A stretch of 64,000 nucleotides of DNA from positions 7,564,001 to 7,628,000 of the forward strand of contig CM119372.1 of assembly GCA_051294905.1 (NCBI GenBank). Reading direction: 5' to 3'. Origin of the DNA: Botryllus schlosseri (taxonomy: Eukaryota). The notes beneath the pieces were generated by a model. That model saw only the letters and a list, made by a program, of their open reading frames with translations, was not told where the DNA came from and did not search any database. The position numbers and the translations under genes are program-made. Below are positions 34,523-41,301 of the stretch, one piece after another (positions within the stretch are counted from its first letter, which is position 1; each line of letters opens with the position of its first letter).

Positions 34523-37500
34523 CTAAGAACATATTTCTTCCCATATGCAGTCGTGCGGATCATTGAAACCAAAGTATTCCAACGCGTCATCTAAATTCCA
34601 TAATCCGTCGTGACGCGGGTTACCGTGTAAAGGCATCGTGAGCAGACGTTCGTTATGAAATATTTGTAACTTCATTTGATCTGTTAAATTGAATATAGCA
34701 ATTTACTGACTTGCAATTGACTCGAAATCTGAAAATTGGAAATGGCTTGACCTGACTCGAATTAAAATTTGCAGTGATCCGAATGACTTGCGACTCGGTA
34801 GTGACTATTGAAGCCAGCACCATCTCTTAGGCGAAACATTTCTATATAATTTACTCACCGTCACAAACTGAAGTCTGAAAACCGATGAATAGATCCATAC
34901 TGGTAAAGAAGCTATATATCACTAACCATCGCATTTGTTGAGGACGAAAGCTACATTCCCGCTACCTGGTATGAGATTGGACATCTTGAATTTTCGATTC
35001 AGTTTCGACCGGAAATCTCGGCCGCGGAAAGGACCCTCGTCCTTGAAACAAAGAAGTCATCATATTTTAAATTATATGGTGTATATTCAATTTAAGGAGT
35101 TTAGTTGAAATATAGATTATGAGTGGATTTGTCCAGCTATAAAACTTTGGATAGCTGCGTAAACCGCGACAGAACTGTCTGTCTATGGCCCGCGACTCGT
35201 ATTGTACAATGTACCATTGTACAGTGTACAGTAGGGCTCTTCAAAAATGACTCTTTTTCTCAAATCGTACTGGCTACTTGATAAAATTGTTAGGTTACCT
35301 AATTTAAGCCTACACACAAAATTTGGTTCAATTCCCGCCAGTAACCGCTTTGCTACAGGAGAAGAAAGTTTCTATTTATTATATAAAATTAAATAATAAA
35401 AAAATTTGAAAATTTTCTGTTCACCTCATGAAAGAGTTGGGCTGTCTATAGAAACGATGCTCACCAAATTTGGTTCAATTCCAACCAGTAGAAGCGCAGT
35501 TATTGCCGTCGAAAATTTTGGATTTGAATAAAATAGTATTTACGGTGACCGATTCTTTGTTTATTTATTTTAGTTGTGCTCACCGTAAATACTATTTTAT
35601 TCAAATCCAAATTTTTCGACGGCAATAACTCCGCTTCCACTGGTTGGAATTGAACCAAATTTGGTGAGCATCGTTTCTATAGACAGCCTAACACTTTAAT
35701 GGAGTGAACGGAAAATTTTCAATTTTTTTATTATTTATTTTTATATAATGAATAGAAACTTTCTTCTCCTGTAGCAAAGCGGTTACTGGCTGGAATTGAA
35801 CCAAATTTTGTGTGTAGGCTTAAATTAGGTAACCTAACAATGTTATCAAGTAGCCAGTACGATTTGAGAAAAAAAGTCATTTTTGAAGAGCCCTACTGTA
35901 CAGTGTACAGTGTACAACATGTACGTACGTACACTACAGGCTAAATTAAGTTCCAAAGTAAATTATAACAAGGTAATTACATACCGAGGCGCACCAGACC
36001 GTGGTGATAAGAGTCACTGAGACTTTTTACAATAATAATAATAATAATAAATTAATAAAATAAAATTAATAAAATCGGTCAGCAGCTGTAATGTATTGTC
36101 TGTTTCGTCCGATCCGTGTGTCCAAAATATATTGAAACTTAAAATTGCGATTGATATCGAGGAATTTGACAGCATGAATCCGATGTAGGATTCATCTATA
36201 CCTATCATTGAAATTCTCTGAATACTGTGATTAGCATTAGATTGTCAGCTTCATCAAAATAGTTGCATAAGGGTCGGGATAATATATTGTATATACGAAC
36301 TAACCTCTATCATCTTCATCTCAGTCAACAGCGATAGCAATGTTGGCTTATGAGCGAAAATGAAGTGATTTGTCTTCTGTTCATTTGACAAGGCTTGCGA
36401 GCTGGCATTTTTCAGGGCAGACAATATGTAATGTTTTAACACACATGAGTGCCTATAACTGTTGACATGTCCGAAACTGCGCTTCATGTAGTCCCTCATG
36501 TCTCTTGAATATTCCAAAGCTGTAAGTGGGAATAGGGAAATCAATCAATGCCGATCTCAAAAGCTTACATCACATTGCAAAGTTTCGGTTAATTGTTGGA
36601 ATGCCGCTCCTCAATAATTACATATATCATTCTACCTAACAACCACATACCTTCCTTGTCGAGACGGCTCAACGCCAGGCACCAAGGGCTATCCTTTCCT
36701 GTCGCCCACTGTTCCCGGGCGCAACCTTCCATGTATATTGTAGGTATGAAAGGCGTCCTTACGTTTTGCGGAGGCACTCCTAATCGCGCTGCTATATTTT
36801 TGCCAATTTTACCTACCAATTTACCTGAAAATATGGATTTGCTGCTTTTTGTATTCTCCGCATTCACAATAGTGGGGAATTTTGGTTTTGTTTCTTAATT
36901 AAGGTCTAATCTAGTAATTCATCTTGATCTGCAATAGCAATAATTAATATTTAGATTGAAAAGCTAGTATTAGCTTCCTGAAGCTATATATAGTCCTTCA
37001 AGTTCAGCTATGCTTATGAAATGTTCCCGAAATTGCTTATTCATACAGTCTATCCTATATATACATAGATTACTGAATGTCGCAGGAGATGAATTAAGGG
37101 CACATTACCGTTGAGAAAACGGCTCACTTTTCTTCCCAATTTTCTTCTGCCGACCGCGGTGCAATTCTCCCACGACATGGTTATGAAGTTGTCAATATCT
37201 ATTTCGTATCGTTGTGATAGCAACGACGCATTTCTGAATACTCGTGCAGACTCCTTCGTGCGTTGGAAATTCGATGAAATGAATCTACAGGTGAAATGCA
37301 GAGCAACATGTTATACCGTTTTATGCTTCGGTTTACGATTATCTTGCGTTAGATAGGCCTGTAGGATTCCGGTTAATATGCTAGCTGCCAGGTTAGTTTC
37401 TGTTAGTGTTAAGTGTACGGTTAGGGTTAGCGTGGACTCCTTTGAACGAATAAATACTCGCTGTGTTGACACTGACTATTTTGAAGGCGAGCGGTATGCG

Positions 37501-40500
37501 CATTACCAGCGTGTACTCAAAGGTGGTGTGGACGGTGGACAGTGGGTACTCGAAAAATCACGTGACCGTCACACCCAGAGACCTTTTGTCACTTTGTTAT
37601 CGTCGATCCGTATGCACTATGCAGTAGTAATTATGGACAAAGTCGCTAATGGTCTTTGTCGATTTTGACTGTGTTCCATATCGAGATGGGTGACAGGATT
37701 TAGCATGGTATATTTTTATGTTGTCATGTAACACTGTACCAAGTTTCAATGCTTTAACTCAATGATTAGCGTAGTAATTTCGCTGTCGAAGTCTGGATAG
37801 ATCAGCGCGCACCGATATATTGCCGACTTCGATAACGAAATTACCAAGCGAATCATTGACTGACAATCCTGAAACTTACCCCGAACTTAGATGACACAGC
37901 CAAGATGTACCATGTCAAATTCCGTCATCCATCTCGGTATGGAACACTTTCAAAATTCAACCAATATCGATTTTTGCGAAAAATCCTTCATGCGATAGCC
38001 GGTAGGCTCAATGCCACATCTGCACACGCAGACCCTGGCATACTCGACTTTGAAAACGAAGTTACTACTGTAATTATTGAGTCACAGCCTTGAAACTTGA
38101 TACAGTGTTAGATGCCATCATGAAAATTTATGGTACGAAATTTTGTTATCCATAGCCGTATGCAGCACGATCAAAATCTACATATACCAATACTGTCCTT
38201 CGCAAATAATCTGTTATGCGGTAGGCTGAATGCCAGTTGAATGCATCTTACACCGAACCAATTTCAAAGGCTGTGACTCGATGATTACGATGTATTTTCG
38301 TTATCAAAGTCGATTATATCAGGGTGCGCGCTGTTCTGACATCCATCTTACCGTATGACAGATATTTCACAAAAGCCGCAATTGGTGTATGTAGATTTTG
38401 AATATGTTTTGTTCCGAGATGGATAACAAAACTTCGCAATAAATATTTTGATGAAGGCATCTAACACTGTACTGAGTTTCAAGACTATGACTCAATGATT
38501 ATGGTAGCAATTTCGTTATCGATATTTCGTTAAGTCGAGCAGGGCAATATATCGGTGCGCGCTGATCTATCCAGATAATCGACTTCGACAGCGAAATTAC
38601 TGCGCTAATCATTGAGTTACAGCTTTGAAACTTGGTACAGTGTTACATGATAACATAAAAATATATCATACTAAATCCTGTCACCCATCTCGATATGCAA
38701 CATAGTCAAAATCAACAAAGACCAATGGCGACTTTGCCTTTAATCATTGCTGCAGACGGATCAACAATAACAAAGTGATCAAAGTTATCTGGGTGTGACG
38801 GTCACGTGATTTTTCGAGTGTCCACAATGTCCACACCACCTTTGAGTACACGCTGGTATTGCGTTACCTTTGTCCTTGATGGTTTGAGAACAATTCGGGA
38901 TATACTGCTGCGAAGCGTTGGCCCAATCCTTTCATCTCCGCTATCCCGGTAACAGCGAGATCTTGATCCAGTGAAGCTTGGTACCAATTACGCCACTCTA
39001 TAATTTTCTGACGAAATTCACGAGTGGATAAAATCAATAAGTAAAGAGCGAATATGCTTGCATCCTCGCGAAGTAGACATGTTAAACGCAGATTTTGGCA
39101 TTAGGGCGGATTTAATCCCCCTGGCAGGAATACACCTAATTTCCTGACTCGTTTAATTTTTTTAAAGAACAAATTTACTAGTAGGCTATGCATTTTCACT
39201 GATGTTATAATGGAGTTGAGATGGACATTACTATTAATCAATACCGCACTTATTTCAAAATATGCCGGTAAAAACGATAGACTTGTCGGTCATGTTTGTT
39301 ATTAGCATATTTCTCTGCATAACGGAGAACGAGTTATCAGTAGGGCGATTGTTTTAGGATATAGTAATTGGTGAGTGAGGTCCAAGGTGTTTACAAGCTC
39401 GCTCCGATATTTCAAATCTGAATCTTGACTGCATGGTGTACACTGTGCAGTAGGGCTGTTCAAAAATAACTTTTTTTCCTGAATCTTGCGGGTTACGTGA
39501 TTAAATCGTTAGGTTGCCTTAAAAAACGACGCACACCAAATTTGAATTCATTCGAACCAATATTCGCGGATTTCGTAGAGTTTGAAAATTTCGAATTTGC
39601 CTATGAATGCAAAAAAATTTTTTTATAAAATTTTTCTTCCAACCCCATAAAATTGTTGCGCTGTCTTCAAAGATGATGCAAAACAAATTTGACTCAATTC
39701 CAAGCCGTAGAAGCGGAGTTATTTGAGCTTTTCGATGATAATTCTTGGATTATCCTTGATTGGGGGATAATCCCAGAATCGTCATCGAAAAGCTCAAATA
39801 ACTCCGCTTCTACGGCTTGGAATTGAGTCAAATTTGTTTTGCATCATCTTTGAAGACAGCGCAACCATTTTATGGGGTTGGAAGAAAAATTTGAAAAAAA
39901 ATTTTTTTGCATTCATAGGCAAATTCGAAATTTTCAAACTCTACGAAATCCGCGAATATTGGTTGGAATGAATTCAAATTTGGTGTGCGTCGTTTTTCAA
40001 GGCAACCTAACGATTTAATCACGTAACCCGCAAGATTCAGGAAAAAAAGTTATTTTTGAACAGCCCTACTGTGCAGTGTACATGTACATTGTACATTGGT
40101 TCTTATAGCACAGGGGTTATCAGCGCATGGGTGGATCGCGAGATGTTTCCAAAACTCAGATTTGGGTTGTGGTCTAAAAACGCGACGCAGTCAACATTAT
40201 CGGTATGAAGCAACAGCACTCCAGCAGTATATAGCCTATACACTGAACTTTAATACTACTAGCAACCAACTGCTGCTGTTGAGCGTTTTTCTCTATTAAT
40301 TTCAAGCTACTTCGTATAAGGACTGACAGATCCAACCAAAAAAGTAGAAAAGTACCAAAAATCTAACATTATGTACAGCAATGCCAAATTTAAATACTTG
40401 CGGGCTAAATGTTGCGATTATTAAGCTTTTTAATATCAGAAAATGTCAAAATTTTATTTTTTAGTGCGAAATCCTCCGTTTTTTAGGTCAATAAATAATA

Positions 40501-41301
40501 TCCCTAGTTATCAGCAATCATGACACTTAACGCATATAAGAACCGTCGGAACAGCATGTTCGGAGCGATGAGTTTGAGGTTGCATTCTCAGTCGCATAGA
40601 GCACGTCTAGTAGTTTGGAAATGGCCGGGTCACATGAATCATGCAAAGTTGATTAATTTCAATTAAATTATATTTATTCGGTGAGGCATCACTTGCTTTC
40701 GCGAGGGGTATAGGCCTACTCACCGTGAGGTCGTCTTTACAAAGAGTAGCTTTGCCGGTGATGTTCAATATTGATTGCAATTCCACTAATTGACGGTAAG
40801 AATCACTTGCGGCCTTCCCAGGATGCCTGGAACCATGCCTCGCAATTAGTACCACAGATTCGGGCGTGCAGCCTGCGATTATTTTGAAGGGCTTTAACAT
40901 TTTATCGCCTTTATGAGATGTAGGCTGTAAGCAACCCATACCGACAACAGGCCGTAACAGCCGTACACCAAACCCCTAAATTGAGGGGTGGGGCGAGCTC
41001 GAAGGGCCCCAAAATAATCTAGTAAACAAACATAAATTGTAAACTAATTTTAGGTAGAAATGTTAGCTTCGCAACTTCGTAGCTCATGAAGGCGGCAAAA
41101 CAATTTACCCGAGGTCCTGTCTGATATCCCTATTTCTCCTCTGACTGTGTCGTAAAGAGTTGCGCCATGGAATTGTTTGTAGGGATATCCAGCCTCTCCA
41201 ATATGATCTTTTGAACAGAACCCATCCGATAGCCGTGGAATCGTACATGCCATAATAATGCATAATAATGATATGGCCGAAGGGCTGGATTCGTCCGCCA
41301 T
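34523..41301 (-). CDS. MINPP1: Multiple inositol polyphosphate phosphatase 1-like histidine acid phosphatase, 439 aa, with signal peptide
   Basis: Exons 41301-41109, 40872-40724, 39007-38868, 37284-37109, 36824-36651, 36519-36305, 35041-34927, 34680-34523; all GT-AG, 1320 nt in frame. N-terminal hydrophobic signal. RHGSRHP nucleophile motif, WRNWY...G.AEM..LG.RF...YPELFS, SSNFQRT, SPWC, LEYSRDMRDYMKRSFG, RKFKMSNLIPGSGNVAFVLNKC and QIFHNE all align with MINPP1. Confidence 0.9.
35232..35895. mobile_element. Full-length palindromic hAT-type MITE (arms about 316 bp, 31-bp spacer)
   Basis: TAGGGCTCTTC...GAAGAGCCCTA. Arms 35232-35548 and 35580-35895. TSD GTGTACAG/CTGTACAG (7/8). Lies in MINPP1-like intron 6. 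Confidence 0.9.
37506..38856. mobile_element. Modular foldback element with long imperfect inverted arms
   Basis: Ends CCAGCGTGTACTCAAAGGTGGTGTGGAC / GTCCACACCACCTTTGAGTACACGCTGG flanked by TA. The inverted match continues for about 350 bp. Internal modules (AACACTGTAC.AAGTTTCAA...ACTCAATGATTA) recur in alternating orientation. Confidence 0.82.
39341..40506 (+). mobile_element. hAT deletion derivative with degenerate transposase C-terminal remnant; hosts the 39451-40068 palindrome
   Basis: Ends TAGGGCGATT / AATATCCCTA. Perfect TSD GTTATCAG (39333-40, 40507-14). 40255-40320 matches the 16815-16890 hAT remnant (caac.aactgctgctgttga.cgtt.t). Confidence 0.8.
39451..40068. mobile_element. Full-length palindromic hAT-type MITE, nested in another hAT element
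   Basis: TAGGGCTGTTC...GAACAGCCCTA. About 305-bp near-identical arms with a few-nt loop near 39760. Perfect TSD CTGTGCAG (39443-50, 40069-76). Confidence 0.92.

Follow-up and report, generated by a model that had tools for sequence, protein, structure and literature searches.

A MINPP1-like gene of the ascidian Botryllus schlosseri from an expanded clade of histidine acid phosphatase relatives that lack the catalytic glutamate

In the histidine acid phosphatases of the HP2 branch, the histidine of the RHGxRxP motif attacks the substrate, and an acidic residue behind a second histidine (Asp in the HD motif, Glu in the HAE of MINPPs) protonates the leaving group and then frees the phosphate from the phospho-enzyme (PMC7762957). 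Replacement of this glutamate in BlMINPP (E401Q) inactivates the enzyme and gave the structure of its phospho-histidine (PMC7762957). According to their titles, the PDB entries 9qz0, 7z32, 3it3 and 6rxf also hold proton-donor mutants that were caught with substrate or as phospho-histidine; titles of this kind describe BtMinpp E325N with InsP6, AppA D304A as phospho-histidine, and the Francisella HAP D261A with substrate. In eukaryotes, HAE and a KDEL-like C-terminal end together mark MINPP1 (PMC12580751). Here we describe a MINPP1-like gene on the minus strand of a 64,000-nucleotide stretch of the Botryllus schlosseri genome (assembly GCA_051294905.1, contig CM119372.1, positions 7,564,001 to 7,628,000; hereafter the window, with positions counted from its first letter). 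A first-pass annotation of the window had proposed that this gene carries His-Lys-Pro (HKP) in place of HAE. Comparison with its relatives indicates that HKP is neither a one-off mutation nor an assembly error and reflects the loss of the glutamate throughout a clade of ascidian paralogs.

As judged from its sequence, the window gene is an intact eight-exon gene for a predicted secreted protein from the MINPP1 branch of HP2 histidine acid phosphatases (PF00328). The claim that the frame is unbroken holds: the eight exons (Table 1) join into an in-frame product of 443 residues, with GT-AG boundaries at each of the seven introns. The core of the signal peptide lies at residues 6-23, where hydrophobicity is at its maximum, and an in-frame stop precedes the ATG by six codons. 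The protein has four N-glycosylation sequons and twelve cysteines. Both motifs reported as intact, the nucleophile motif RHGSRHP and SSNFQRT with the second arginine of the catalytic site, were found where they had been read. Exon 6, the stretch that carries the altered motif, is in frame from position 36517 and has the stop-free translation LEYSRDMRDYMKRSFGH...NHFIFAHKPTLLSLLTEMKMIE. It reads F-A-H-K-P-T-L-L at the position where MINPP1 has G-H-A-E-T-L, with the codons GCT (36355-36353), CAT (36352-36350), AAG (36349-36347) and CCA (36346-36344), so that His338-Lys339-Pro340 stand opposite the His-Ala-Glu of MINPP1. The end of the protein was also correctly described, as EEICS (34540-34526) followed directly by the stop; exon 8 closes without a KDEL-like signal, a Thr-rich stalk or a hydrophobic tail. 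With about 40% G+C, the window is AT-rich eukaryotic DNA, and it contains no second copy of the gene.

The protein is related to MINPP1, and its alignment is secure where the motif lies. A profile made from 16 canonical MINPP1 proteins, which include tunicate, fish, lamprey and sponge sequences, matches the window protein over residues 49-408 (E=5e-56) and aligns its segment rfgHAeTLiPL to FIFAHKPTLLSL with the top posterior probability, HAE falling exactly on HKP. With single exons, Pfam gives one weak match to PF00328, from exon 2 alone (E=0.019), and exon 6 alone has no match among solved structures; the relatives P0004, from Styela clava, and P0005, from a Logan contig, carry PF00328. Of the features that define HP2, the window protein has RHGxRxP with the nucleophilic His in an invariant column, Arg169 (the counterpart of Arg-142 in BlMINPP) and the second histidine, His338. 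The acidic proton donor that follows this histidine (in HD, or in HAE for MINPP) is absent, Lys339-Pro340 standing in its place, whereas HAE or HAD is found in 20/20 of the canonical sequences aligned. The window protein thus lacks a residue that is essential in its family, one mark of a pseudoenzyme, having neither Glu nor Asp at position 340. Of what characterizes canonical MINPP1 it has neither HAE nor a KDEL-like end, and it is not placed among the MINPP1 orthologs. The fold was modelled for a relative, not for the window protein: the AlphaFold model of Styela P0004 has a pLDDT of 88 and a pTM of 0.82, and its top structural matches are the solved bacterial MINPPs, with TM scores of 0.72-0.79 by target length. 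In a phmmer search of the PDB, the GHST of P0004 fell on FTHAEE in a solved MINPP and on THD in a yeast phytase.

A search of 1.8 billion representative proteins with exon 6 retrieved six true relatives, of which none (0/6) has HAE; their motifs are HSQ, HSF, HAP, HST, HTQ and HSD. Two of the six are Styela clava proteins that NCBI has named MINPP1-like, and two come from Logan contigs of 1.5-1.8 kb from other samples, in which the whole frame is uninterrupted, as in cDNA. The same search also returned P0007 and P0008, which were rejected as repeat artefacts. Further protein searches, with P0004 and with alignment A1, scored the top 8000 word-sharing candidates and did not return even the window protein, P0002 or P0003, and are thus uninformative about absence. 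More members reside in the genome of the window itself (495.5 Mb), where a profile search gave 87 exon-sized matches. Besides the window gene, the loci of the clade are on contig 2 (24.19-24.63 Mb), contig 12 (9.99-10.07 Mb) and contig 16 (4.32-4.33 Mb), with weak pieces on contig 7. Counted by the equivalents of exons 2, 6 and 8, there are about ten further copies, a lower bound that may include broken copies; most paralog models are partial and consist of tblastn pieces rather than exact splice sites. The equivalents of exon 6 in these copies read HGF, HHD, HYN, HGW (three copies), HFS and HYS; two residues directly past the motif are deleted in one sub-group of paralogs. Over the clade, the pair of residues after the motif histidine is therefore KP, ST, SF, AP, TQ, HD, YN, FS, YS, GW or GF. 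The copies in the clusters (loci L018 and L021-L047) have the same exon layout as the window gene.

These data bear on the trivial explanation, that the true gene reads HAE and HKP came from an error of sequencing or assembly. To turn AAG CCA into codons for Ala-Glu requires at least four base substitutions, and Ala-Glu is missing clade-wide, from the relatives in several species and from about ten paralogs. Since so many changes would be needed and the loss is common to all relatives, a slip at this site can be dismissed, and we attach next to no probability to an error. The relatives also changed the scope of the first-pass annotation, which had presented HKP as a trait of one gene. The glutamate is absent from the related genes too and its loss is real, but the loss belongs to the whole expanded clade, and HKP itself is not conserved, the two residues after the histidine varying freely from copy to copy.

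In a maximum-likelihood tree of 30 rows (rows shorter than 160 residues and two fungal phytases omitted, rooted on three bacterial-type MINPPs), the sequences without the glutamate form one clade with support of 100/100, and the canonical tunicate sequences form another, also at 100/100. The clade lacking the glutamate stands weakly (83/85) beside vertebrate MINPP1. With its long stem (1.25), the tree gives no date for the duplication. Within the clade, the window gene is apart from the clusters of its own genome, on a terminal branch of 0.83. Parsimony favours a single loss of the acid on the stem of the clade and a chance return of Asp in two members (HHD and HSD). A canonical HAE paralog, whose existence the first-pass annotation had proposed to check, is indeed present: a scan of the genome for PF00328 placed it on another chromosome, in contig 13 at about 11,892,542-11,893,915 (L001:1315-2688). 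This gene is intronless and encodes 458 residues with a signal peptide, RHGTRYP, FAHAETLIPL and a KDEL end. It is 44% identical to the canonical MINPP1-like protein of Styela and 27-30% to vertebrate MINPP1s, and, in view of the eight exons of the glutamate-less paralogs, may be a retrogene or have lost its introns. The window protein is 20-25% identical to canonical MINPP1s and 38-41% to its clade relatives from Styela and the Logan contigs. Because a canonical enzyme of the endoplasmic reticulum, with HAE and KDEL, is encoded elsewhere in the genome, the housekeeping role appears to be covered.

The pocket and the site of the lost acid differ sharply in constraint. Ten positions are invariant in the clade and the canonical sequences alike: Arg76, His77, Gly78, Arg80, Gly135, Arg169, His338, Pro378, Glu402 and Cys442. 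RHGxR occurs in 12/12 equivalents of exon 2; as tabulated by column, Arg169 occurs in 8/8 and His338 in 11/11 sequences. Ala339, Glu340 and Pro344, invariants of canonical MINPP1, are lost across the clade. At both 339 and 340 the column entropy reaches 2.91 bits, where the clade averages 1.35 and the same two columns of canonical MINPP1 have 0 and 0.29; the two positions are thus among the freest of the protein, directly beside an invariant histidine. For the closest pairs of paralogs we obtained dN/dS values of 0.12, 0.15, 0.28 and 0.42, calculated from codons over the tblastn-aligned pieces, which are biased to the conserved parts; the lowest value comes from the copy on contig 16 compared with copy b on contig 12 (dS 0.9). 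The proposed check on selection was thus answered for close paralog pairs, but these do not include the window copy, for which dN/dS is not meaningful since its nearest sequences are just 40-51% identical. The window copy has nevertheless kept its frame, its splice sites and the residues of its pocket at about 40% identity to the nearest full-length relatives.

The members of the clade differ from canonical MINPP1 also in their C-terminal ends. Styela P0004 and the Logan proteins P0003 and P0005 have a hydrophobic helix at the C-terminus, after a disordered linker, and the paralogs in the genome of the window continue past a conserved ...C-x-W-x-x-x-C with stretches rich in Thr and Ser and with hydrophobic tails. 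Two proteins, the window copy and Styela P0002, terminate directly past the last Cys of this motif. None of the clade members examined has a KDEL-like end. Because most relatives carry stalks and tails, and the window copy and P0002 end without them, the clade looks like a set of proteins held at the cell surface by a mucin-like stalk, together with soluble forms that would include the window protein.

The lack of a tail in the window copy might be seen as the onset of decay in a recently inactivated or decaying duplicate: it is the only copy in its genome without stalk and tail, its terminal branch is long (0.83, as above), and it would be redundant among its many paralogs. We hold this to be improbable. 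The gene has eight intact exons and seven GT-AG introns with no stop or frameshift, it retains the pocket residues, the conserved pattern of cysteines, the signal peptide and a poly(A) signal, and the Styela relative P0002 is likewise without a tail. In addition, 14 small sequencing runs from four studies (contigs of 13-135 million letters, guessed to be RNA) contain 0.05-0.18 of the words sampled from the gene span, a share of about the size of the exons. The exons make up about 0.2 of the gene span of 6.8 kb, and DNA runs contain 0.25-0.66 of these words; the share in the 14 runs fits a spliced transcript without proving it.

What may the window protein then do? Its ascidian-specific clade of paralogs has split off from the canonical enzyme and multiplied, and the residues for gripping and accepting phosphate (Arg76-His77-Gly78-x-Arg80, Arg169 and His338) have been kept clade-wide. 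Because the Ala-Glu after the second histidine, and the proline four residues on, have lost all constraint, there is no general acid/base at the canonical place. We propose the following. Having a signal peptide and no end for retention in the endoplasmic reticulum, the protein would exit the cell; its conserved pocket would bind phosphate esters or other oxyanions, and turnover would either not occur or halt after one phosphate had been transferred to His77. Such a protein could serve as a binder or sensor outside the cell, as could its membrane-tethered relatives. We lean, if only slightly, towards this account of the window protein as one that binds phosphate esters and then either does not react or stops after a single transfer, because the pocket and the nucleophile are intact, the acid is missing, and engineered mutants of the acid are inactive. 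The analogy with these mutants also makes plausible the function suggested in the first-pass annotation, that of a pseudo-phosphatase, a binding protein or a stalled enzyme.

Some of the data weigh against this account and would suit an active phosphatase without the canonical acid, which might be confined to substrates with good leaving groups or have another residue, or a water molecule, as a substitute, and in which positions 339 and 340 would tune the specificity of each paralog. Phosphoanhydrides (inositol pyrophosphates, polyphosphate, nucleotides) and aryl or acyl phosphates may be candidate substrates. The strict retention of the nucleophilic His suits a working enzyme equally well, and with it the three arginines and the second histidine are invariant in all copies. 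The clade has conserved acidic columns of its own, at 112, 291, 348 and 362, which make a compensating acid conceivable; the members with HHD and HSD have an Asp two residues past the His and may be active; and the close pairs of paralogs are under purifying selection. A precedent is given by the HP2 domain of Vip1/PPIP5K, which has H[I/V/A] in place of HD and nonetheless acts on inositol pyrophosphates (PMC13573052). On the other hand, the E401Q mutant of MINPP is inactive and stalls at the phospho-histidine, and the proton donor is needed also for hydrolysis of the phospho-enzyme, whichever the leaving group (PMC7762957). Moreover, no single substitute residue is conserved at or near the old site, where some paralogs even delete two residues. 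Taken together, an active enzyme seems to us possible but rather doubtful.

Equally tentative is a wider reading that may be drawn from the sequences of the clade: an expanded extracellular family, for the most part tethered by stalks, whose members could bind phosphorylated ligands or be covalently phosphorylated by them, each copy with preferences of its own and the window copy in soluble form. In such a family, the free variation beside the pocket may set the ligand preference of each copy, and the candidate ligands may include phytate, polyphosphate, phosphorylated glycans or lipid A, and oxyanions such as vanadate. The closest parallel in design would be the chitinase-like lectins, an expanded family that has lost its catalytic acid and retained the cleft for binding, although their fold differs from that of HP2. 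If the wider reading is true, the clade would be their counterpart for phosphate esters. An extracellular MINPP as such is not without example, as Mipp1 of Drosophila is anchored outside the cell by glycosylphosphatidylinositol and is catalytically competent.

Among the described systems, the canonical MINPP1/MIPP enzymes (human, avian and plant proteins, BtMinpp, BlMINPP and the contig 13 copy) share with the window protein PF00328, RHGxRxP, the second Arg, the motif His and the signal peptide. Canonical MINPP1 is single-copy, whereas the clade of the window gene is multi-copy and consists mostly of members with both stalk and membrane tail. The engineered HP2 mutants (BlMINPP E401Q, BtMinpp E325N, AppA D304A and Francisella HAP D261A) resemble it in having an intact pocket and nucleophile and no acid. 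They are point changes made in the laboratory, whereas the loss in the clade is natural, old and family-wide, with the neighbouring Ala and Pro lost and newly conserved residues downstream. The phosphatase domain of Vip1/PPIP5K/Asp1 belongs to HP2 too and likewise has neither Asp nor Glu behind the second His; it differs in being cytosolic and fused to a kinase, in its GAF and zinc inserts and in its activity on inositol pyrophosphates, and it has no specific relationship to the clade. The Styela clava MINPP1-like proteins XP_039274263 and P0004 belong to the same clade, have also lost the glutamate (HSF and HST) and bear only an automatic NCBI name; P0004 has a C-terminal transmembrane-like helix that is absent from the window copy.

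It is only under this automatic name, MINPP1-like, that members of the clade are known in the databases. In the literature searched, no paper dealt with tunicate MINPP1, with a naturally occurring HP2 pseudo-phosphatase or with the MINPP1-like proteins of Styela, and we are aware of no pseudoenzyme branch of histidine acid phosphatases that is natural, conserved and expanded. Should the proteins bind without cleaving, or stop at the phospho-histidine, they would be the natural counterpart of the substrate-trapping proton-donor mutants that crystallographers have made, and would indicate that inositol phosphates, polyphosphate or ligands like them have an unknown role outside the cell in the invertebrates most closely related to vertebrates. 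Should they be active instead, they would show that a MINPP can function without the canonical acid, which would be relevant to the engineering of phytases.

The gene model (Table 1) was built by enumeration of splice sites with four full-length relatives as guides in tblastn. Its sole ambiguous joint is that of exons 4 and 5, where donor and acceptor at 37128/36855 yield 443 residues and those at 37109/36824 yield 439; we prefer the former because the starts of the corresponding exon in the paralogs favour 36855.

Table 1. Coordinates of the MINPP1-like gene in the window
Feature	Position	Strand	Remarks
Exon 1, coding part	41109..41301	-	ATG 41301-41299; signal peptide; phase-1 GT donor; tblastn with Styela and Logan relatives
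Exon 2	40724..40872	-	nucleophile motif RHGSRHP 40840-40820
Exon 3	38868..39007	-	KIIEWRNWY...DLAVTG...
Exon 4	37128..37284	-	second catalytic-site Arg in SSNFQRT 37277-37257; alternative donor 37109
Exon 5	36651..36855	-	acceptor 36855; alternative 36824
Exon 6, reported stretch	36305..36519	-	His338-Lys339-Pro340 at 36352-36344
Exon 7	34927..35041	-	tblastn guides and splice sites
Exon 8	34523..34680	-	ends ...CIWEEICS, stop TAG 34525-34523
Poly(A) signal AATAAA	34436..34441	-	about 80 bases past the stop

Exon-sized members of the clade were also seen on JGI/IMG contigs of 2-22 kb that are filed as metagenomes (P0006 and P0018-P0020); they read HSD, and the samples in question contain ascidian-like DNA. 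The Botryllus genome holds in addition many other PF00328 genes on contigs 4, 8, 9, 10 and 11 (L002-L012), which are of the RHGDR/HD acid-phosphatase type, intronless and 400-476 codons long. Some of these are arranged in tandem, on contig 8 at 19.39 Mb and 2.31 Mb and on contig 4 at 21.53-21.55 Mb.

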